Assembly: GCA_033442325.1 (NCBI GenBank) | Contig: JAWQFM010000005.1 | Location: 1,799,665 to 1,863,664, forward strand | DNA: 64,000 nt | Reading direction: 5' to 3' | Source of the DNA: Salpingoeca rosetta | Taxonomy: Eukaryota > Protista > Choanoflagellata | In this document: positions 22,710-63,363 of the stretch, one piece after another | How the letters are laid out: the number at the start of each line of letters is the position of its first letter | How positions within the stretch are numbered: the stretch's first letter is position 1 | Notes under the pieces: model-generated | What the model was told of the DNA's origin: nothing | Database searches by the model: none | What the model saw: the letters and a program-made list of their open reading frames with translations, nothing else | Translations under genes and position numbers: made by a program

Positions 22710-43931
<21,222 letters not shown>

Positions 43932-48152: not shown

Positions 48153-49543
48153 ATGGCGGACGATCAGAACGAGGGTGTCATCCGAGCGGAGGAAAGCCAG
48201 GATCGGCTCATGGACATGTCAGGTGCAAGGAATGCACATGCGTCGAACAAGCGCAGGCATAGGTCCCGTCCTCATTCTCATTCTCATCCCAGTCACCCAG
48301 AGCAAGACAAGAGCGCGAAGTTCTTGGAAATTCCTGTCTTCGACCAAGAGAAATTGACACCAAGTCACAACCAGGTCTGTTGTGCAACCCTGAACCGATC
48401 CAAGTGTCAACATGTACCATCATCGAGTGCACCATTTCGACGAACCACAGCGGCTTGTGTGCCTCCCTGTGTCCGTGTCTGTCTGTGTTTGTGGTGTGTT
48501 CCTGGCACATCCATGCAATTGCCAAGTTCTCAAGCCTCATGTGATACAACAATCACTCCTGCACATGTTGCAGGTGAAGAAGAAACTCGATGACTTTGCA
48601 GGCGAATGGTGCGTCAGGAAGAACGGCTGGTTTGCGTGGTTGATTTGCTAGATTTGCTCTGCTGTATCATTCCAGCATTCCGATCCCTCGTTGCTTCCGT
48701 TTGTGGTTTTGGACTCAACCCCACGTCATGCAACATAAGCTGGACACACCAAGACCATTCCTGGGCCCCCTCCTTCTTCTTCTTTTCCAAAATCAGCACC
48801 ACTTGCTTGCTTGCGCTAAACACGAAACACCCACGTGGCATCTTTCCTTCTCGGGCACGTGCTGTCAGGGCGTGGCCCGCGTACGGCCTCGCATACTTCG
48901 CACTCATTGATGTGTACTTCGCCCCGTTTTCTCTTCACCCTACTTGTCCGTAGGTTCGGCCTGAGCGCAAGCCGTGGCATCACCAATCCTGCATGGGGAG
49001 TCCTCAACCTGAAAGGCAACACACACCAGGTTCGTTGGGTGATTGCGAGAGCAGACATTGTCATGTCTCTCTCGCTCTAGTTCGACGGCGCTTCTCTCTG
49101 TCATGCCAACGAGCCTTGAGTTGCTTCAACTGTCTTACGTTCTGTCGCTTTGCACAACACGCCACCACACTCGTCACACCTGCACCCGTTTGGCTTGCAC
49201 GTGCCTCACCTCCATTGCTTTCTCCTTTGATCCCGGCTGCCTTGAAGGCCCCATTTGTGTGTGTGCCGCGCGGTCCAGCCGACGACAAAAAGCCTGCTCG
49301 GCCGATGAACACCGTGTCTTTTGTGAGAGAAGTTGTCAAGAACCATGCAGGCGCCAGCTACGAAGACCCAAGTCTCATCCTCAGCATCACAGGTGGTGCC
49401 GACAGCCTCCACTTGCCCCCACGCATGGAGCGTGCGCTGACGCAGGGCATTCAGCAGGCTGCCCTTCGCACCAAGGCCTGGGTTGTTTCCGGTGGCACCA
49501 ACGTCGGTACGTTTTGCGTGCCTGCGTGGGTGTGCCTGCGTGC

Positions 49544-49595
<52 letters not shown>

Positions 49596-49894
49596 CATTG
49601 GCAAGACGTTGAAGCATCACTTGCTTGCCAGCTTGCCAGCTTGGACAATCACCTCTGCCCCATCCTGCTTTCTCAGGCCAGATACACACACACACACTCA
49701 CACATACACACACGCACACATCACTGTGTCCCTCGTAGGCGTCATGCGCCTGACCGGTTCCATCATGCAGTCAACTCCACGCCGACAGGGAGACTTCAAG
49801 CCACCCACCATCGGCATTGGTCAGCATTCACGTCCGCGTACACGCACACATACACACACACACACCTGCAAATCCTCACGTACTCACACACTCA

Positions 49895-49954
<60 letters not shown>

Positions 49955-51158
49955 ACAATCTCCCCCATTCTTCAACCGCGAATCGAACTTGCAGCAACCT
50001 ATGGCGTTATCCGCGATCATGACTTACTGCATCCGGACGACGTGAGCGCTTGCACCATGTCGTATTCGGGCTATGCCCTGCTGTGCTTTCGGTGTTATCT
50101 AAGCGCAACTCACATCCCGTCACTTGAACTGCCACCCCTGACACCACACGCAGCACGCGACTCCAGTTCATTACGACTCTCGCCAGAGGTCCGTGCGTTC
50201 GTCGAAGAGGAAGGAGAAACAGCAGCAGGCACAGCCAAACTCTGCGCCGACAACCCACGCTCCGCCAACAGCCAACGCCGATTCAACCAGAAGCGCCACA
50301 GCCGCCCCCAACGAATTTGCTGAGACAGAGTTTGCTGAGACAGAGTTTGGAGATTCAGCGTATGGGTTCAACGATGAAGAGGGCGGCAAACCTACCGCTG
50401 CCAGCAGTGTGGCCCAAGCTGATGCCAACGAGAAGAAGCAGCAACCACACGGCGGGCAAGCTCCTCCTGGCCGCCCCAAATACAACACATTGTTCGACAA
50501 GGATGATGTTCAGCCCGTTCCGCTGGATCCAAACCACGACTTCTTCATTCTGGTTGACGATGGCACCGACAATAAGTTTGGCGGCGAGATTGAGTTCCGC
50601 GCAGAGTTCGAGAAGGTGCGCTTAATTGTGTCTCTTAGTGTGTGTGTGTGTATGTGTGTGTCCTTGTATGGGTTTCTGTGGTGTGTTTCTGTTTGCCTGC
50701 CTATTTGTCCTTTTGTTTGTGCGTGCGTGCGCCTGTGCACGCTTTGTGCATGAGCTTCCAGTTGTTCCTCTTGTCCACCCGAGCAGCCTGGTCTGCCAAT
50801 CCTTTTACTCAAATCATTTACGAACACACGCATCCTGTTCCTGCGCCAAGGCTGCAAAAGGCCGCTTCGACTGTCCCGTGGTCACGGTGGTGATCCAAGG
50901 TGGGCCTGGTACCCTGAATACAGCCCTCGAATCAGGTCAGACATCCCCTGTCTGCTAGCTTGTCGTGTCTCACCCGTTGTGACGGTAGTGGTGTTGTCAG
51001 GCTGTGTAAAGGTTGCCTGTGAGGGGATAATTTCATCGGTTGCACTGAGGAAAGAGCGGCTTTTTCGCTGAAAGCTTGCATACCAGCCAATGATGCTCTG
51101 TTTGCTGTTGTTCAGTTGATTGCTGACACCCAAACGCCACCCCCACATGCACGGTGTG

Positions 51159-51204
<46 letters not shown>

Positions 51205-53296
51205 ATGTGTGTGTGTCTTGCTTCTTTGTTTCACATCAGTTCGAGCGCAGACGCCGATTGTGGTCGTGGAGGAATCCGGCCAGACTGCGGACGTCCTCGC
51301 CTACGCTTACAACTTCATGCACAGCCAACTGTAAGTCGGTTCGGTTGGTGGTTGAGAGACTCGAGCGGTACCTGTCCGGAAACATAGTTGCGGTGCACAG
51401 GACAAACACAGGGGTCAGAAGAGAAGGCGAGAGAGAACCCACATGCACATACACACACTTGCACATGCACACATGCGCACCCACACATACACTCATAAGA
51501 CATACAGCACTCAAGAGCTGAGTGGTTTCAGGCAATCACTCATATCGAACGCCTTGCTTCTGCTTCTGCCTGCTGCAGGTATCGACACACGAGCTACACT
51601 CTCAACGCCCTGAGGGAAATGATCAAGAAGGCATTCAAAATCGGAGAAACCAAGAAAGTGAACACGTTTCTCGAAAAAGTGCTGGAATGCGTCCAGCACC
51701 CAGGCCTCGTACGTTACCGTAACGGCAGGATGATGTTGAAACCGTGACGCTTTTTCCTTGTTTTGGTGCTTTCGTCGTCTCATGTCCCTCACCAACTGTG
51801 ATGTGATGTGGCTGTGACACGACCCTGGTTGCTTTCAGGTGGTTGTGTACAACCCAAACACCAGTGGCCTCGATGCTTTCGACAAGGCCATTCTGCAGGT
51901 TCGTTGTGCGTATGCGCTGTGTGTACGGTTGTGTGTGTGTGTGTGTGTGCGTGCGTGCGTGTGTGTGTGTCTTTATGAGTGTGTGTGTTTCCTGTGTGGT
52001 TACCTGCCTGGCTGTATGTGCATGTCGCAATTGTTATTAAGTGGCATCGCGCTTGACGTCACATCCTGTGCACCTTCCATCTTTTCCACGTTACCTGACA
52101 CCCTTGACATCACCTCCTTTTAACTCTCCACTGTATCTTCCAGGCCGTGTTCAAGACAGAGAATGCAAGCCTTCTCAACAAACTCAAGCAAGGTGCGTTG
52201 TTGCCTCGCGAGTCATTTGTGGGACTGTGAATGTGCGACGATGAAGAGCACACACGCTTCCACATACTCTCTCTCTCTCTCATGCCTGCTCACACTCACA
52301 CTCGCACGTTTCACACTCACGTTGTGGGAATACACCCATCCAGCAATGTTCTTTGACAACATCGACATTGCCCGCAACGCGCTCCACACTGCAACTGAGG
52401 TGTGTCATCTACCTGTGCCTGCCTCTGTGTGTGTGCGTGCGTGCGTGCCAAGTGCTGATGAACACGGTTTGTGACATCTTCACTCCTTTTCGCCCAATGT
52501 GTCACCTTTCACACCACTGTCCTCGCCCATGGCCAACACGTGCACAGGCTGAAGTCGAGGAATGCATCAACGACAACCTCCTGTATGCTTTGCAACACAA
52601 CAAGCCCGACTTTGTGGAGCTTTACCTGTCGCATGGCGCTCATTTCTGTGACGTACGTCGTCGAACCATGTACTTTGTTGTATGTTGAGTGGATAGGTGT
52701 TCGTTTGTGTCTATGTCTCTGGCTGGCTTTGTGTGTGTCTGCGTGTCTGTCTGTGTGTGTGTATGCGTGCGTGTGTGTATGTGCGTGTGTCTGGTTGTCT
52801 TTGTCTGTCTGTCTCTCTGCCTGTCTGTGGCAGTGCACTGGTCGCGTGCTTGTGGGTTTGTTTTGTGTTGTTTCGAACACCCGCAAGCACACAACAATCA
52901 AGCTAACGGCACATGCGGTGCTGTCGTCCATATTCAGATGCAGCTCCCGTCCGAGCACCGAAACCTGGAGAATGCACCTGAAAGCTACAAGGACGCGAAG
53001 CGCCCTTCCACAACGTCATCAAGTGGGAAGCGCCAACCATCCCAAGGCACTCAGCAGAACCAGCAGCAGCAACGAGAAGAGAAGACGGGGGAATCAGAAG
53101 AACAGTCCGAGCAACAGGCCCTCGTGTGGCCGCATGACTTCCAGTTTGTGGTCAAGACGCTGTACGAGGTACGTACTTGCGCGTTCATATGATTGTGGGT
53201 GGGCATGTTGGAGTGTGCGCACCTATCGCGTACCCACATCCGCCATTCGTTTGAATCACACACACGCACATCGAGTGCACACACGCACATCGCGTG

Positions 53297-53371
<75 letters not shown>

Positions 53372-56356
53372 GCACAGAGATATAATTTTTTTTAGGGAGA
53401 GAGCTGAGAGGGACAGTACTTTTTTTTTTTTAAATAGACTATGTTAAAGCATATTCTGACACGATTTTTTATTTTTTTTTTATTTTTTATTTTTATTTTT
53501 TTTTTTTTTTATCTTANNNNNNNNNNNNNNNNNNNNNNNNNNNNNNNNNNNNNNNNNNNNNNNNNNNNNNNNNNNNNNNNNNNNNNNNNNNNNNNNNNNN
53601 NNNNNNNNNNNNNNNNGTGTGCGTGTGTGTGTTGAGCGTGTGTGTGTGTGTTGAGTGTGCGTGCTGCGAACTCTCACCTCTTGGCTCACACATAAGCGCA
53701 TGCACAATTCACAACGTATTGCGCACACACACACACACACATTGTCACGTGGCGCACGTTTACTCGCCCCAACACATGCACATACCCACAACAAAACAAA
53801 TGCAGCCCCAAGCGCAGCTGGGAAACACACACGAACCCGACCTTCAGGCGCCTGATGAGCAGGAAGCTGAGCAAGTCGGCGTTTCACAAGAGCATTGACA
53901 CTGCCATGCAGAATCATGTCGATTTGTCCGCGGAGGAGCACGCACGCCGTGAAGAGGAAGCAACACACGTCCTCTTCGTAGGTTACACTGGACACGAACG
54001 CACCAATTCTGCCCATGCAAGCTCTCACGCTTTCGACTTCTGGACTGCAAGTTGAGATGCACACACACACAGTCACACATAGTCACACACACACAGTCAT
54101 ACACGCACACAGTCACATACAGTCACACATGCTCGGTTTTCTGCATCCAATTCACTCACTTCTGATGTGCCCGTTTGCTTGTTGGAATAATGTTTTGGCT
54201 GGCTTGCAGTTTTGGGCCGTCGTGACAGACCAGCTTGAGTTGGCGTGCCTGCTATGGCACCGCCTCCAAGCACCGATTTCGAACGCCCTTCTTGCACGCC
54301 ACATCCTCCTCCGTCTCACGCAAACGCAGGCTCTCAAAGGCTCTCACCTGGAAGAGGAGCGTGAGAACATGCGACAGCATGCAGCGTACGTTGACACATG
54401 TGCAGTCAATGTGCTGCTTCGTTTGCGTCAGCGTCTTTGCGTCAACCAAGTTATCCGCAGCAAATGCAGGCACTGGCATTCTTTTGGTTTGACGTTGTTA
54501 TGGCGTGTGTGCTGATCTGCTACGCGTACAAGCGGCTGTCTCACCCAACAAGCTGCGCGGTTTCTTGTCTATTATCTGCAGTCACTTTGAGACGCTAGCC
54601 TTGGGTGTTGTCAAGGAGTGCTACAACGAGGACACGGAGGAAACAGCAAGCCTCCTTGCCCAGAAGGACAACGTGACGGGTCGCACCCCTGTGCAGGTGT
54701 GCGTGTGCGTGTGCGTGCGAGTATGTGTGTACGTATGTGTGGGTGTATCTGTGTGTCTGTGTGTGTGTCATACGCATCTTGTCCAAGGCTTTCCCTCACG
54801 TGTCTTGTTTGTGCGACATTGGCACCCTGGACCAGATTGCGTATGATACAAAGGCGAGCGAATTCTTATGTCATGCCGCCACACAAGTGGCCATCAACGA
54901 CACGTGGTACGGAGACTTGGCCCCTTCCATCAACTTCTTCACGGTGAGACAGCCTCGATTTGGACTTGTATGATGACGCCACGGTGGCAGTGGTGGTGCC
55001 AATGCATACGCTGGTGGTTGTTGTGATGCGTATTGTTTTATTGTGTGCTGCACGCTGCTGTCCTCTAAGCTTTGCTTCAGTGTGGTCAGACCGTTGGCAA
55101 ACCTCTGCTCATCTTGTACTCACGTCGACACGTGGTTTGCAGGTTCTTGTCGCATGCATCCTGCCCTTGTACCCGCTCTTCAAGTTCTTCCGTTTCCTGC
55201 CCCACCGGGCCAAGGTTTGGTTTGTTTTTGTGGCCAGAAGTGTGTTGTGTTCCAGCTCAGAATGCGACGTGATGTTGTGCCCCGCTTCGCAGCGTGTGTG
55301 GGAGCTGGAACTCACTGGCTATTTTCGTGCGCTGTACTTTTGGAATTGCAGGCGGACAACACGGGAAAACACCAAGCGCGGCAGTTCTTTGTTCAAAACG
55401 AAGACAACAACCGCTCGCTCTCCAATGAGGGTAGTGGTGACGAAGACAACAACAACTCGCCATCCAGTCTGGGTAACGGTGACAGAGGCAGCCACGCGTG
55501 GAGTTGTCGACCCTGGCTTCCGTCACGATCGTCGTTGACAAACGCCATCAAGTTTACACGCGCTCCCATCACAAAGTCAGTGGCTGTTGATGCTGTTAGC
55601 GGTGGTCGTGAAAGTGGTGTTGACGGTCGTATCTGCTTGTGTGTGAGGCTGTGAGCCGCTGCTGTTGCGTGCCTTTTGTTTCGGCTTTTGTCAGTGAGAG
55701 CACTGACCACTTCTTGTCACGCGATGTACACGCTATGCTTGCGGTTGCAGATTTGCATTTGACCTCTGGTCGCACCTGTCCCTCTGTGTGCTCATGTCCT
55801 ACTACGTGCTGGAACAACCGCAATCCACGTTGTCCAATGTCGAGTGGGTCCTCGTGGCGTGGTTTGCATCCCTGAGCTTGGAGGAGATCAGACAGGTGTG
55901 CATCGATGTTGGTCGAAGCGAATGTGTCTTGTTGAGCGCTAATGCGCTTGCGTCTGTATGTGTGTGTGTGCATGGTGTATGTGTGTGTGTGTGTGTTTGG
56001 TGTGTGTATGGTGTGTGTGTATGGTGTATGTGTTGCGTGTTGTGTATGTTTTTTTTTATTTGACTGGCAGCATGCTGGCTTCCAAGGCTGGTTGGTGTGT
56101 TGCTGTGAAGACTGTGTAGTCTTTGTGGTGTTAACGATAGCGACACAATGTTTGTGCACTTGAACCAATGCAGCTGCGATTCTCGAGCATTAGTGGTCGC
56201 TACTGGAAATACTCGTGGAATCTGCTTGATCTTGTCATCCTCGCCCTCTACTGGTCTGGATTTGCCATCCGCATCTCACAACCAGATGACAGCCAGTTTC
56301 AGGTGCGCTGCTCTCTGCAAATGCACTTGTTGTTGTGAGTTGTGGCTGTATGTATC

Positions 56357-56425
<69 letters not shown>

Positions 56426-56789
56426 GCCTGTGTTCTGTGTGCGCGTGCGCAATCGCATTCAACTGACGTCACATCACTCCAATGCCATTCGACCACCGTG
56501 AATAGACGGCAACAAAAGCTGTTCACGCGTTCCTTGTCGTTGGACTTTGGCTACGTCTCATGCGCTACTACGCCGTCAGCAAGAGGCTGGGGCCAAAGCT
56601 CATCATGATTGGACAGATGACCCGTGACATTTTCACATTCATCCTCCTCGTCGTCCTCTTTCTTATCGGTGCGTATCCACAGTGGGCTTGTGATGTACAA
56701 CCGTGCCGCGCGTTGTGCACAACCCACATACTGTGTTGGGTTTCCCAAGCAAATTGCTCACATTCACCCGCAAACACGTCCATGCTGTC

Positions 56790-56858
<69 letters not shown>

Positions 56859-56895
56859 CACACACACAACAACAACAACAACAACAAACAACAAC

Positions 56896-56975
<80 letters not shown>

Positions 56976-57178
56976 CACGCGTGCAGGTTACGGTGTGGCT
57001 GCACAAGTGCTTCTGTTCCCCCTGACGGAGTTCTCGGGCCAGAAGGTCATCAATGTGTTCTTCCGCCCCTATTTCCAAATCTATGGCGAAATTCAGCTTG
57101 AGGAGATTGCGCAAGATACGGACTGCATCGGCTTTTACCCTTTCTCTGCCTGCAGCCGCCCTGTGAGTCCCACCACAC

Positions 57179-57271
<93 letters not shown>

Positions 57272-58224
57272 ACGTGAGAGCAGTTTATTGCACTGGAACT
57301 GACACATGATACCAAGCAAGCCAAGGCGAAACAACCGCACACGCACACACACACACACACGCACACACACACAAGCCCACACAAGCCCACACAAGCATGC
57401 TAGCACGTATTCCAGCTCACAATCGTACTTTGCATTTGTCATCTTTGCAGGAAGTGCGCCTCGTGCCGTTCCTGCTGGCGGTGTATGTCCTCATCACCAA
57501 CATTCTCCTCGTCAACCTCCTCATTGGTATGTGTGTGTGTGCATGTGCATATGGATGGACGTGAAAGTGCTGTGTGCGAAAGATGTGCACGCCTGCAGCT
57601 GAGCAACTCCATTCGTCTCATCGCATCTCATCTTATCTCGTTTCACATTCGTCTGGTCTGTGGTTTCTCCTTGCCAGCCATCTTCAATGACACCTACAGC
57701 AAGGTGCAAGACAAGGCACTTGCCTTCTGGTATGAGCAGAACTATGGTACGTTCAAACGTGAACTGTGTAAACTCTTGACATACTGGTCGTGCATGTTTC
57801 GTTGTGGCTGTTGTGCACCAACACCCTTCGTCCAGATTGCACACCCACGCCACCTCCAACAAATTCGTTGTGTGCAACCATCCTTCCATCCTTGGTTCGC
57901 CCCTTTTGTCGCTCCAATCGAACATCTCCTGCCGCGATTCCTAACTTGCCTGCCATCTCTCTACTCCCACCCCATCTCCTCCCGTTCCTCAGAGTTACAA
58001 CTTGAGTACAACGACCGCCCGCTGCTGCCTGCTCCACTCATCTCCATTTCGCACGTGTGGCTGATGGTGTCGTACCTGGTCAAGCTTCCGCGCGACTGCG
58101 TTCAGTGGTGCAAGCGCCAACACGACAGCAAAACGGCCGACGCCACGAAGTCTCACCAAGGCGACAGCAACAGCAGTGCACGACATGAGGAAGCCGCTGA
58201 AGTCATCGAAGGCAATGGCGACGG

Positions 58225-58299
<75 letters not shown>

Positions 58300-58319
58300 C
58301 GACAACAGCCACGAGTACG

Positions 58320-58350
<31 letters not shown>

Positions 58351-59867
58351 CCATGCCTCTGGTGGTGGCAATGACAGAAAGAGCGACGACGACGAAGATG
58401 CGGACAGCGAGGCCAAACAACTGGCGGAGTGCCGGCGCTTTGAGAAGAGCAACATGGACAGCTTTCTTCAGCGGTTCAAGCAGGAGCAGCAAGACACCAT
58501 CGAAGCGCGCGCGCGCCGCAGCAACAACCAGCTGGAGGAGGCACAGGATGACATTCGCACCGTCATGGAACACGTGCGCGCCTTCCGCAACAGCCAGGAT
58601 CAGCTCATCTCGGAAGTCCGCAAACGCATCGATGCCGTTGCCAGCAAGGTGTGTGTGTTGTGTGTGTGTGTTGTGTTGTGTTGTGTTGTGTTGTGTTGTG
58701 TTGAGCGAGCCCGTGCGAAAGAAGAGGCACGAACATGCTCGGGTCAAAGACATTCACCAAGTCGCACACTCGCCCATTCTCTCCCACTCTCTCACATTTT
58801 GGATCGTGCATGGGCAGGTGCTTGATGCACCTGAGGGCACCAGCACCAGAAGGACTGAGCTCAAGCCGCCTCCACCAACTGCTTACAAAACTGGTGACGT
58901 CTACTACGATGACGGGCGAACGAAGTTTGTGCGCAACCTGGATCATGCACCAAGTGTTGAGCCTCATGAGCTTGGCCAAGACGAGAACGCGTCTTGGATG
59001 GACGAACCACATCCCGAGGGCATTGCATTTGACAAAGACGCAGGTGGCGTGTTTCGCCGGTCCCGCGTCCCGCCCGAGCCTGATTCTACTTCTGATTCGA
59101 AGCCTGATTCTGGGCCTGATTCCCACAACACGAGCAAGATGCCACTCAACCCCAAGGGGCCGACAGGCATCAAGGGTCGGGGCTTTCTCGGGCGCTGGGG
59201 CGTCAATTTGGCCGTGGATGCCGTGCTGACGCGGTGGAAGCGCAACGAGGATGGCACGGAGCTTGTGCGCGAAGGCAAGAAGATGCTCGAGTTTGTGGCC
59301 ATTCACCGGAAGAAGGACGGCGTGTGGGCCATCCCAGGCCGCTTTGTGAGGCAGGGGCCAAAGGACACCGATTCGGAAGACCAGATCAAGGCGCTGCTGA
59401 AGAATGAAGCGCTCATCACGCTGGTCACGGAGGCCGTGGACATTCACCAGGACAAGTACACTGACGACGAGGATGCACAGCAGGCCAGCATCAACGACAG
59501 CATTAGCGGCGCTGAGGGCCAAGGCGACGACAAGGAGGTACAGGGCGTGGAACTGTCCCCGCAAGAACGCGAGGTGATGAAGCAGCTGCGCAGGTGCAAG
59601 ATCAAGCAGTTTGAGCGCATCTACAGCGATGACCCACGCAACACCGACAACGCCTGGATCGAGAGCCAGTGCTTCAACTTCCACGACGAGAGTGGTCGCA
59701 TCAAGCTTCGGCTGAGCAGCAAGGCCGAGGTGGCCGACAAGGTGGCGTGGCTGCCGGTGATGAGTCACACGCGTTTCTTCGCCTCCCACCGGCATCTTCT
59801 GCACATGGTGGCCAACGAGCACGATGCCTACTGGCCCGTCGCTCACGATGATCAGGACGCCGAATGA
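48153..59867 (+). CDS. TRPM2: TRPM2-like cation channel (SLOG/MHR1-4, six TM helices, TRP helix, coiled coil, C-terminal NUDT9-H domain); ~25 exons; spans an assembly gap
   Basis: PSLILSITGGA..AALRTKAWVVSGGTNV|GVMRLTG..TIGI|ATYG; PLDPNHDFFILVDDGTDNKFGGEIEFRAEFEK; PVVTVVIQGGPGT; PIVVVEESGQTADVLAYAY; ALQHNKPDFVELYL; FWAV..LACLLW; S2-S3 LEEIRQ..WNLLD; LRLMRYYAVSKRLGPKLIMI; FRPYFQIYGEI; VLITNILLVNLLI|AIFNDTY; EYNDRPLLPAPL; PLNPKGPTGIKGRGFLGRWGVN..TRWKR..LEFVAIHRK..WAIPG..DDPRNTDNAWIES. Confidence 0.93.
53517..53616. other. Assembly gap (100 N) inside the TRPM2-like gene
   Basis: Run of N, preceded by a low-complexity T-rich stretch. Confidence 0.99.
56790..56975. repeat. (CAA)n trinucleotide repeat in a TRPM2-like intron, directly upstream of the acceptor at ~56986
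   Basis: Direct reading. The flanking exons join FLI|GYGVAAQVLLFP without it. Confidence 0.85.
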
Positions 59868-60437: not shown

Positions 60438-60530
60438 TCCGCAAGAGTGGATGTCGCCCTTCATGACGACTGACTCTATGCCGTGTACATTGTGTCCTCA
60501 CTCATGTCACCCTCCCTCCGTTCTGCTGCG

Positions 60531-60674
60531 CATGGCAGTGGTTGGACGGCTTGTGACTGGCTCAGCTGTTGGTCTCCTGTCGACATCGGTGCCAGTGTAC
60601 GTGGCAGAGCTCAGCCCAAAGGCGCTTCGTGGCAGGCTCGTCACTGCAAATCAGGTGTGTGTTTGTGTTTGTGT

Positions 60675-60740
<66 letters not shown>

Positions 60741-62518
60741 CAGCGAGAGAGAGAGAGCGAGCACTTTCATGTGTGTGTTTTCTGTTGTCCAGTCTTTGCG
60801 GTCGAACGCGTGTGGAAGCCTGGTTGCATTTCTCCCTCACACCCACCTCTTCTCCGACACGACGATGTGCATGGCAGCTGTTCATCTGCATTGGCGTGCT
60901 GCTGGGCTTTGTTGTCGACGACATCTTCAAGTGCCCCGGAAACGGCGACTATTGCCAACGCGCACGCACATCCGCCTGGCGCTGGATGCTTGCCAGGTAG
61001 GCGTGTGTTTGTGTGTCTCTGTGTGTCTCTGTGTGTCTGTGTGTGTCTGTGTCTTTGTGTGTGTCTGTCTGTCTGTGCGTGACTGTGTGTGTCTGTGTGT
61101 CTGTGTCTTTGTGTGTGTCTGTGTGTCTGTGCCTTTGTGTGTGCCTGCCTGTCTGTCTGTCTGGCTGGGTTGCTGGCCGGCATGTTTTTTCCCTTGTCCG
61201 AACGTTTTGCACCGGCACGTTACGCACACCGTCCAACGCCACATCTGAGATTACATCTTCCTCCCTCTCTCCCTCTCTCCCTCTCTCCCTCTCTCCCTCA
61301 CTCCCTCCCCCCCCCACTCCCTCTCCCCCTCTCCCCCTCTCCCCCTCACTTCCTCTCTTCTTCCCCCACTACACCACTTGCCCCACCTCCCTACCAGCGC
61401 CACCCCTGTCGCTGCCGTCCTGATTGTGGCGTTTGCCTTTGCGCTGCCGGAGTCACCGCGGTTTCTTGTGCGCCGAAAGCGACTGACGGCTGCACGCCGC
61501 GTCCTAGCTTGTGTCAGGTCCTCCCCAGCGCACATCCAGCAGGTCAACAGCAGCCGCTGCGGCTGTTGCTCTGTGTGTGTGTGTGTGTGTGTGTGTCTGT
61601 GTTTGTCTGTGCGTGTGCTCATGTATCTCTGTGTGTGTGCGTGTGTGCGTGTCTGTGTGTGTGCGTGTATGTGAGGCTGCTTGAAGACAACCTATTCACA
61701 CGCTCACATGTGTACACATACACGCATATGCGCGTCACTCCCATGCCGTGGACACATCACGTACAGGAGCTGGATGAGATAACAGCCGCGTGCAATCAGC
61801 CAACAGCGACATGGCGGTCCCTGCTTCGCCCAAACGTCCTGTATGGTGTGTACATTGCAACCATGCTCAGCGCAATCCAACAATTTACAGGTGAGAGCCT
61901 TCGCCTCGTGGTTATTTGCAATTGCCCTGTTCTTGCGTGCATTGCACTCTCCTGTTTCTTGTGAACGCACTCCCCCTGTTTTGTCGCTGCCGCCACTTCA
62001 TACCTGTGCTCCTTCGTCAATTGCTGTGCGCTACAGGCGTGAACGCGGTCAACTTCTACGCGCAAACCATCATCATCTCTGCTGGGTTTGACCAGGACCA
62101 CGCCTTCTCCTTCTCCATCTACATTGGCGTCATCAAGGTTGTGTTTGTTGGCGTTGGGATGCTCCTCATCGACAGCGCGGGCCGCCGCATCCTCATGATT
62201 GTCGGCATTGCCGGCATGACCCTCTCAACCGCCCTCCTAGCTGCCGTCTTCCAGGTGCGCTGTGGTGTGTGTGTGTGTGGGGGGGGTTGTGCGTGTGTGG
62301 GGGGCGGGGGGTATTTGGTGCTTACGGTGTACGGCGATCGAGCACATACACATACACGCACGCACGCACACGCACACACACGCACACACACACACATTGC
62401 CCTTGGTTTGCAACCTCCTGCAGATGAAGGAGGAGCACGGCAGCGTCAGCAATGGTCTTGGTTGGCTCGCCCTCATTGCATTGTTTTTCTACATGGGCTT
62501 CTTCGAAATTAGCCTCGG
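60531..62518 (+). CDS. MFS sugar-porter family transporter, partial (TM1-3 and the C-terminal TMs not visible)
   Basis: [37 protein letters not shown]|[15 protein letters not shown]|..LPESPRFL..|..LSAIQQFT|[23 protein letters not shown]..|..[12 protein letters not shown] are sugar-porter signature motifs. Confidence 0.85.
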
Positions 62519-62602
62519 GTATCTACCCCCAACTTTGCTGTTGTCATGTGCAAGCACTGCGCACTGCGCCTCTGTGTTGCTGGTCTGTCCAATTCTGTGC
62601 TG

Positions 62603-62696
<94 letters not shown>

Positions 62697-63363
62697 NNNN
62701 NNNNNNNNNNNNNNNNNNNNNNNNNNNNNNNNNNNNNNNNNNNNNNNNNNNNNNNNNNNNNNNNNNNNNNNNNNNNNNNNNNNNNNNNNNNNNNNNNNNN
62801 NNNNNNNNNNNNNNNNNNNNNNNNNNNNNNNNNNNNNNNNNNNNNNNNNNNNNNNNNNNNNNNNNNNNNNNNNNNNNNNNNNNNNNNNNNNNNNNNNNNN
62901 NNNNNNNNNNNNNNNNNNNNNNNNNNNNNNNNNNNNNNNNNNNNNNNNNNNNNNNNNNNNNNNNNNNNNNNNNNNNNNNNNNNNNNNNNNNNNNNNNNNN
63001 NNNNNNNNNNNNNNNNNNNNNNNNNNNNNNNNNNNNNNNNNNNNNNNNNNNNNNNNNNNNNNNNNNNNNNNNNNNNNNNNNNNNNNNNNNNNNNNNNNNN
63101 NNNNNNNNNNNNNNNNNNNNNNNNNNNNNNNNNNNNNNNNNNNNNNNNNNNNNNNNNNNNNNNNNNNNNNNNNNNNNNNNNNNNNNNNNNNNNNNNNNNN
63201 NNNNNNNNNNNNNNNNNNNNNNNNNNNNNNNNNNNNNNNNNNNNNNNNNNNNNNNNNNNNNNNNNNNNNNNNNNNNNNNNNNNNNNNNNNNNNNNNNNNN
63301 NNNNNNNNNNNNNNNNNNNNNNNNNNNNNNNNNNNNNNNNNNNNNNNNNNNNNNNNNNNNNNN
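62697..63363. other. Assembly gap (~667 N)
   Basis: Run of N following a (GT)n tract. Confidence 0.99.

Follow-up and report, generated by a model that had tools for sequence, protein, structure and literature searches.

A Salpingoeca rosetta paralogue of the TRPM2 chanzyme with a degenerate Nudix box: a candidate non-catalytic ADP-ribose sensor

The closest described relative of the gene reported here is srTRPM2 (XP_004993318/F2UB89; PDB 8sr7-8sri), the TRPM2 chanzyme of the choanoflagellate Salpingoeca rosetta, which is built from MHR1/2, six transmembrane segments, rib and pole helices, and a C-terminal NUDT9-H enzyme domain. In srTRPM2 the channel is opened through the MHR1/2 site and NUDT9-H is dispensable for opening, although the domain up-regulates opening directly and down-regulates it indirectly through the slow consumption of ADP-ribose (ADPR) (Huang et al. 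2024). The srTRPM2 structures place three Mg2+ ions on E1386 and E1390 and make D1460 the residue that deprotonates the attacking water; replacement of the E1386 equivalent in NUDT5 or NUDT9 lowers catalytic efficiency by 3-4 orders of magnitude, and replacement of the D1460 equivalent by about two (Huang 2024). According to the TRPM2 literature that we searched, the Nudix boxes of all non-vertebrate TRPM2 are canonical (Iordanov et al.), a statement repeated in a 2026 study in Molecular Biology and Evolution that adds a second loss in metazoan TRPS (PMC13143021), and the step from enzyme to sensor has been regarded as one taken by vertebrates (and TRPS) in connection with the loss of pore stability. 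Here, we describe another TRPM2-like gene from the same genome as srTRPM2 and with the same architecture, located in a 64,000 nt stretch of S. rosetta DNA (contig JAWQFM010000005.1, positions 1,799,665 to 1,863,664; 'the window'), the NUDT9-H domain of which carries a degenerate Nudix box.

The NUDT9-H domain of the window gene is encoded by its last exon (58818-59867, + strand), and the motifs by which an initial annotation of the DNA had recognized it, NPKGPTGIKGRGFLGRWG, TRWKR, WAIPG and DDPRNTDNAWIES, are all present in the translation. Comparison with PDB sequences by phmmer matched the exon, well above chance level, to the S. rosetta TRPM2 chanzyme (8sr7; E 2e-41), human NUDT9 (1q33; E 3e-37) and Nematostella TRPM2 (6co7; E 6e-33), and the alignments were always split, covering query residues 98-181 and ~247/266-340 and leaving the Nudix-box region between them unaligned. 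The distance from the GE/GP position to the next conserved helix is 21 residues in NUDT9 and 65 in the window protein. An AlphaFold2 model of the domain (mean predicted local distance difference test score, pLDDT, 81.8; predicted template modelling score 0.81) had srTRPM2 structures as its eleven best Foldseek matches (E about 1e-21 to 1e-19, with 1e-21 to 8sre, and 8sr9 also among the top matches), followed by NUDT9 (1qvj; E 2e-19) and then human TRPM2. The last exon encodes a NUDT9-H domain that, as modelled, keeps the NUDT9 fold. The Pfam NUDIX profile (PF00293) gave no match even at E 10, to either the whole exon or the trimmed domain; the same profile detects the tails of srTRPM2 (E 6.8e-6), of the relative P0002 (E 1.2e-7) and of the S. 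rosetta protein XP_004996225. No Nudix box was found in the other two reading frames of the last exon.

An alignment of the window domain with 69 relatives (70 sequences, MAFFT) defined the extent of the decay. Where the family reads WAIPGG-xVDxGE-x7-REFxEEAL, the window gene reads WAIPGR-FVRQGP-KD(TDS)EDQIK-ALLKNEAL, and this degenerate stretch, which runs from WAIPGRFVRQGP to TEAV, occupies 59325-59438, where it had first been placed. In srTRPM2 numbering, G1371 is replaced by Arg, E1377 (the Glu of GX5E) by Pro, R1385 by Ala, E1386 and F1387 by Leu, and E1389 by Asn, with E1390 alone kept as Glu. The altered Gly of the GG pair is conserved in 98% of the 46 canonical sequences. The alignment thus agrees with the initial annotation that GG has become GR, that residues have been inserted, and that the REF part of the box has gone together with an Mg2+-binding Glu; it also revealed two features that had not been noticed, the loss of the catalytic base D1460 and the retention of every ADP-ribose contact. 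Two segments are added: 3-4 residues that precede the Nudix helix, relative to srTRPM2, and an acidic insert of ~40-45 residues that follows it, the 46-residue span from TLVTEA to VEL holding 13 Asp or Glu and two Lys or Arg.

To check the register, we compared the predicted Nudix helix with that of a control. The AlphaFold2 model of the srNUDT9-H domain (mean pLDDT 95.3) shows a G-G-F strand (134-136) followed by a loop of 6 residues and a helix of 13 (143-155); E1386 takes the 8th position of this helix and E1390 the 12th. The model of the window domain shows a G-R-F strand (124-126), a 10-residue loop and a continuous 20-residue helix, EDQIKALLKNEALITLVTEA (pLDDT about 70-76), then a low-confidence region (157-197; pLDDT 53-57) and the conserved helix PQEREVMKQLR. 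Counted from the helix start, E1386 corresponds to L144, and by MAFFT to L143. Both registers thus make it Leu, and they put the one kept Glu on E1389 or E1390. The MAFFT register, which pairs REFMEEAL with ALLKNEAL, preserves the buried F/A/L pattern (L-x-x-x-A-L). Read from the sequence, the predicted window helix contains no acidic i/i+4 pair in any register. The initial annotation had allowed that acidic residues of KNEA or TEAVD might take over the Mg2+-binding positions: the KNEA Glu does most likely stand at E1390, but the E1386 position is occupied by Leu in both of the registers that agree with the structure.

The changes are concentrated on catalysis. Of 59 columns conserved in at least 85% of the canonical sequences, the window domain keeps 46, and the substitutions affect five of the six columns in the Nudix signature or at the catalytic base, compared with eight of the remaining 53 (one-sided Fisher test, p 0.0014). 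On this distribution, the decay is aimed at the catalytic signature and not spread across the fold. All six side chains that contact the C-terminal ADP-ribose in the srTRPM2 structures (Huang 2024), namely W1264, D1330, R1360, F1372, D1426 and R1428, are identical in the window protein. Changes of the same kind are known to inactivate related domains: NUDT9 carrying RILGEE or REFGKK is inactive, as is human TRPM2 with its RILRQE box, and the Nematostella domain (nvNUDT9-H) carrying AILGEE or AEFGKK loses catalysis and keeps its Michaelis constant (KM) for ADPR.

In contrast to its enzyme domain, the channel part of the window gene is intact by every motif that we aligned. The N-terminal MHR1/2 (SLOG) region includes both F268 and R275 of the N-terminal ADPR site, each of which is essential for ADPR gating of srTRPM2 (Huang 2024), within a segment, DGTDNKFGGEIEFRAEFEK, that matches srTRPM2 and 17 relatives column by column. 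The six-transmembrane core is complete, with LEEIRQ, WNLLD, FQIYGE and WYEQNYELQLEY all found; the cation-site motifs LEEIRQ and WNLLD align with srTRPM2 and with a fish TRPM2, and srTRPM2 has exactly the same selectivity filter, FQIYGE. The pore sequence, YGE-IQ-LEE, marks the invertebrate type: the post-filter triplet is acidic and proline is absent, a combination that characterizes the 'stable pore' (Iordanov et al. 2019), and S6 and the TRP helix are conserved. The N-terminal ADP-ribose site, Ca2+ site, pore and TRP helix are all intact as far as their residues reveal, and the protein is shown by its sequence to keep everything that srTRPM2 needs for opening by ADP-ribose and Ca2+/Mg2+. 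One residue of another cation site, E1114 of the MgMHR site specific to srTRPM2, is Lys in the window model (ECRRFEKSNMD), and is kept as Glu in most choanoflagellate relatives.

The closest full-length proteins to the window protein are choanoflagellate TRPM2-like channels, four of them from S. rosetta (srTRPM2 itself, PTSG_05446, XP_004987771 and XP_004996225) and others from Microstomoeca, Hartaetosiga, Monosiga and several Salpingoeca species. It is at most 46% identical to any of them, and about 46% identical to srTRPM2 over 1201 aligned columns; the window gene is a paralogue distinct from srTRPM2, as had been suspected from its MADDQNEG N-terminus, which is the start of the exon at 48153. 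The description of it as a 'second' paralogue holds in so far as the gene is separate, but understates the family: S. rosetta has eight TRPMs according to a preprint of June 2026, five of them with NUDIX by Pfam PF00293, and we found at least four other S. rosetta TRPM2-like proteins with NUDT9-H. In a maximum-likelihood tree of 30 full-length proteins, the window protein falls inside a clade (98% support by the Shimodaira–Hasegawa-like approximate likelihood ratio test) that contains Hartaetosiga (REFMEE), the four S. rosetta paralogues and Microstomoeca (REFIEE), on a terminal branch of 1.2 as against 0.27 for srTRPM2. The boxes of its neighbours are canonical except for RKFLEE in XP_004996225. 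Because the gene nests among relatives with canonical boxes, its box has decayed on its own branch, separately, as this tree reads, from the losses in vertebrates, in metazoan TRPS and in the other choanoflagellate dead-box clades; the independence from vertebrates that was first proposed is borne out at sequence level. A tree of the NUDT9-H domains alone left the backbone unresolved and gave the window domain a branch of 1.99.

Public sequencing runs bear on whether the gene is expressed. RNA-like runs (a guessed type) from studies P5 and P6 contain every word sampled from the last exon (1.00), and further runs from these two studies contain 0.50-0.52 of the interval 54200-59867, in which the gene model has an exon share of 0.509; in DNA-type runs, drawn from several studies, the share of that interval is 0.93-0.98. 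Since the RNA-like runs contain only the exonic half, they fit, without proving, spliced transcripts of the gene model in which the last exon is complete and the insert retained. We also considered whether the acidic insert could be a missed intron, and rejected this because the RNA-like runs contain all of the sampled words of the exon.

We think it probable, though well short of certain, that the window gene encodes an intact, transcribed paralogue of the srTRPM2 family, the enzyme domain of which has kept its fold and ligand contacts and become a non-catalytic, ADPR-binding regulatory module. In such a channel NUDT9-H would no longer hydrolyse ADP-ribose at a meaningful rate but would still bind it, and would act only as the positive regulatory module that it is in srTRPM2, ligand binding driving NUDT9-H tetramerization and so favouring opening. 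The self-limiting step, local consumption of the agonist, would be missing, and with a non-inactivating pore of the invertebrate type the channel would also be without the substitute found in vertebrates, pore inactivation. It might then behave as a sustained ADP-ribose reporter, the signal of which would end only once other enzymes had cleared the ligand. The roles of 'sensor-only channel' and 'heteromeric modulator' suggested at the outset are candidate functions; the sequence-level reading is right, and the functional claims for the paralogue that build on it are plausible.

Several observations weigh against a binding-competent, catalytically dead module. One of the two Mg2+-site Glu residues, E1390, survives, and a Glu adjoins the lost catalytic base (D1459 to Glu). 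A HMMER alignment to a profile of canonical sequences only, made at low posterior probability, sets the KNE Glu on E1386, treats ALIT as inserted and sets the TEA Glu on E1390. On the side of binding, ADP-ribose is held in srTRPM2 partly through the three Mg2+ ions bridged to E1386 and E1390, so that binding in the window protein may be weaker or the pose changed; the Arg of GRTG, 96% conserved, is Pro; and the very long branch of the domain would also fit relaxed constraint. The acidic insert adjoins the cleft that takes the buckle helix in srTRPM2, and may alter or even replace tetramerization.

The strongest alternative is that NUDT9-H has lost both catalysis and ligand binding and survives as a structural remnant, an appendage for folding, trafficking or assembly, with gating left to the N-terminal MHR1/2 only. 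We judge this possible but unlikely. It draws on the behaviour of srTRPM2 without NUDT9-H, which still gates on ADPR and Ca2+, with lower surface expression and long closed states, on the dependence of the Mg2+-bridged binding mode on E1386, and on the GRTG substitution, the domain's branch length and the low model confidence of the 40-residue insert beside the Nudix helix. Random decay, however, would not be expected to spare six of six ADPR-contact side chains while changing five of six catalytic-signature positions; the Nematostella box mutants retain their KM for ADPR; and the 1050 nt exon has stayed open with 46 of its 59 conserved columns kept.

It is less probable still, and in our view improbable, that the domain remains an enzyme, with residual hydrolysis or hydrolysis by an altered mechanism that would use the NEAL Glu, the TEAV Glu one to two turns further on, the Glu beside the former base, or acidic residues of the insert. 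The kept E1390 equivalent and the D1459-to-Glu change would serve such a mechanism, and so would the HMMER register, which puts Glu on both Mg2+ positions. That register, though, ranks below those from MAFFT and the helix start and is itself unlikely, since it places a 4-residue insert within a continuous helix, breaks the F/A/L pattern and has a low posterior; in the continuous helix the KNE and TEA Glu residues lie 8 positions apart, not 4. Similar single or double box substitutions abolish the activity of NUDT9 and nvNUDT9-H, human RILRQE shows the same pattern and is inactive, and in the window gene the Gly-to-Arg, Glu-to-Pro and D1460-to-Val changes come on top of those in the box. That the gene is a copy in decay or without expression, or a product of faulty assembly or modelling, is very improbable: although the gene contains a 100-N gap and four weak junctions, and no annotated protein for it was returned by either large protein search (an all-against-all representative search and a word search with the relative P0005), its frame of 4521 nt and 23 exons stays open up to a single stop, none of the functional channel motifs is damaged, nearly all of the region is present in DNA-type runs of several studies, and RNA-like runs contain the complete last exon but only the exonic half of the region.

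Set beside srTRPM2, the window protein has the same filter, cation-site residues and N- and C-terminal ADPR contacts, whereas REFMEE, GG, GE and the base Asp of srTRPM2 are ALLKNE, GR, GP and Val in the window protein, which alone has the 3-4-residue pre-helix insert, the roughly 40-residue acidic insert, a poly-Asn tract in the rib/pole region and Lys for E1114. The NUDT9-H branch of the window gene is 10-25 times longer than that of srTRPM2.

The window protein resembles human TRPM2 (PDB 6puo, 6pus) in its box and in the loss of the base. Position by position, human RILRQE parallels ALLKNE: both put an aliphatic residue in place of the first Glu and Leu in place of Phe, then have a basic residue and an amide where the second Glu would be, and both retain the last Glu. 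Vertebrate TRPM2 has likewise lost the Asp that serves as catalytic base (Ser in human, Val in the window protein). The determinants of the reversed ADPR pose of vertebrates (D1330 to Tyr, F1372 to Ser and the absence of W1264; Huang 2024) are not shared, and the reversed pose is not expected in the window protein because it retains W1264 and F1372 and does not have Tyr for D1330. Nor is the pore alike: the vertebrate type, in which gating depends on NUDT9-H, has an inactivating pore with a Pro before an uncharged post-filter doublet, whereas the window filter carries Glu and is followed by an acidic triplet without Pro. Metazoan TRPS (soromelastatin) is likewise a TRPM-related channel, the NUDT9-H of which lacks the residues for ADPR hydrolysis, but it is a separate metazoan clade in which pore substitutions accompany the loss (PMC13143021), whereas the window gene is a choanoflagellate TRPM2-type channel with an unchanged pore. 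Outside channels, the bacterial regulators NrtR and AraR use a Nudix fold to bind ADP-ribose or a related ligand without hydrolysis and were weaker Foldseek matches; at 11-16% identity, they are unrelated in sequence and fused to DNA-binding domains, not channels, and serve as an analogy only.

Degenerate boxes are common in the expanded choanoflagellate family. Besides S. rosetta RKFLEE, recognizable NUDT9-H domains with degenerate boxes occur in S. infusionum (RLVFTK and RVLWTK), S. punica (RIFLNK), H. balthica (RTLVEK) and S. macrocollata. The full-length TRPM2-like proteins concerned are P0057, P0120 and P0088 (S. infusionum), P0065 (S. punica), P0157 (H. balthica) and P0048/P0050 (S. macrocollata). 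These proteins lie elsewhere in the tree, most have lost W1264 and the last Glu (to Lys), most have also lost D1460, and none has the inserts of the window protein; their positions at several places in the tree suggest repeated losses. A further example came from an AT-rich genomic Logan contig (L001, run SRR14727189; 2971 bp), in which 1120-2559 codes for a rib-helix exon of TRPM2-like type and for a NUDT9-H last exon with the box VQFLKV and the catalytic loop AGKET. The best match of the window exon, at 45% identity, is this Logan sequence (protein P0001, 271 aa, box VQFLKV); it may be an orthologue or yet another independent loss, between which the domain tree does not decide. Molluscan TRPM2-like matches with odd boxes probably belong to the TRPS clade already described and were not counted as new.

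A TRPM2 channel in which the enzyme domain has turned non-catalytic is already known. What is new here is the choanoflagellate setting, beside the reference chanzyme; the selective retention of chanzyme-type contacts; the RILRQE-like box; and the uncoupling of all this from pore changes. Our literature search found no description of a catalytically degenerate NUDT9-H in choanoflagellates, and the window gene is a counter-example to the generalization that non-vertebrate boxes are canonical, in the very organism of the reference chanzyme structures. Because PF00293 does not detect its domain, the 2026 survey based on that profile most likely scored the gene as lacking NUDIX, and surveys of this kind under-count NUDT9-H in choanoflagellate TRPMs. 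If the functional reading is true, the gene would be a natural uncoupling of a dead enzyme from a stable pore that has arrived at a vestigial box like that of human TRPM2. As a natural partner to srTRPM2 in the same cell, it could be used to test the role of self-hydrolysis in gating, the ligand pose without Mg2+ ligands, and the co-assembly of paralogues. We also raise, tentatively and as something we rather doubt, the idea that the enzyme-to-sensor step has been repeated within single choanoflagellate genomes, where hydrolysing and non-hydrolysing paralogues side by side, possibly as heteromers, might set the length of an ADP-ribose signal.

Table 1. Positions in the window of the TRPM2-like gene and of the elements discussed (residue numbers are those of srTRPM2)
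Feature	Position	Strand	Details
Whole TRPM2-like gene	48153..59867	+	23-exon model, 4521 nt coding, 1506 aa, single terminal stop
Exon 1 (MADDQNEG...SHNQ)	48153..48374	+	ATG at 48153; donor CAG/GTCTGT (exon/intron)
MHR1/2 exon, N-terminal ADP-ribose site	50408..50615	+	F268 equivalent 50577-50579; R275 equivalent 50598-50600; from alignment with srTRPM2
Assembly gap, 100 N, inside the gene	53517..53616		Adjoins the least certain exons
S1-S3 exons, transmembrane cation site	55751..56302	+	E 55884-55886; Q 55893-55895; N 56219-56221; D 56228-56230
S4-S6, pore and TRP-helix exons	56506..58009	+	Filter FQIYGE 57073-57090; post-filter LEE 57097-57105; TRP helix 57728-58009 (spliced)
Last exon, linker and NUDT9-H, 349 aa	58818..59867	+	One open frame of 349 codons, stop TGA
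Kept ADP-ribose-contact residues	58995..59639	+	W1264 58995-58997; D1330 59217-59219; R1360 59307-59309; F1372 59343-59345; D1426/R1428 59631-59639
Start of Nudix motif	59337..59360	+	GG to GR 59337-59342; GE to GP 59355-59360; from the 70-sequence alignment
Predicted Nudix helix, EDQIKALLKNEALITLVTEA	59376..59435	+	AlphaFold2 helix 137-156; box equivalent ALLKNE 59391-59408
Acidic insert after Nudix helix	59436..59555	+	None in 69 aligned relatives; low model confidence
Catalytic-base loop	59721..59732	+	Family GGDDA reads KA-EVA: D1459 to Glu, D1460 to Val

The gene model underlying these positions was obtained by scanning the three forward frames with a profile hidden Markov model built from 23 full-length relatives, themselves taken from a representative protein search, to locate the exon cores, and by choosing junctions on the model score together with GT/AG sites; the resulting frame is uninterrupted. 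A scan of the whole window found no second TRPM gene. Donor sites in the introns are mostly GTACGT, GTAAGT or GTGAGT and acceptors mostly CAG, and the last exon is preceded by an AG acceptor immediately before 58818, with a GT donor after the preceding exon at 58648. Exon 1 was joined by homology to 49248 (APFVCV...), where the 'APYLRLS' motif of the relatives appears to mark the join. The weak junctions are 49823 to 50408, 52659 to 53697, 54951 to 55751 and 55907 to 56174, and the model between 52660 and 54209 is provisional because of the 100-N gap within the gene. The 2026 preprint describes a different S. rosetta TRP gene that is short of 83 residues where genomic sequence is missing. The window contains a second assembly gap, at 62697-63363.

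The gene is rich in repeats. Long (GT)n/(CA)n microsatellites occupy nearly all of its introns (49500-58820), and the intron at 56669-56986, between the S5 and pore exons, consists almost wholly of CAG/CAA/ACA repeats. Whichever of the three frames is read, these give long poly-Q, poly-N and poly-T tracts, which might lead gene prediction astray. Within coding sequence, the exon for the rib and pole helices has ~25 in-frame Asn codons at 58226-58303 and a second, shorter run, with no counterpart in relatives. At 59080-59135, units of the CCTGATTC type are repeated in a slippage-like manner and encode PDSTSDSKPDSGPDS. This insert separates the NUDT9-H cap from the core, is modelled at low confidence and is found in none of the relatives. 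Outside the gene, the + strand upstream (31780-43931) carries very long open frames (3007 aa and 1072 aa) with low-complexity Gly, Ser and Ala tracts, and downstream, at 60500-62560 on the + strand, there are exon fragments that resemble a transporter of the sugar/MFS type.

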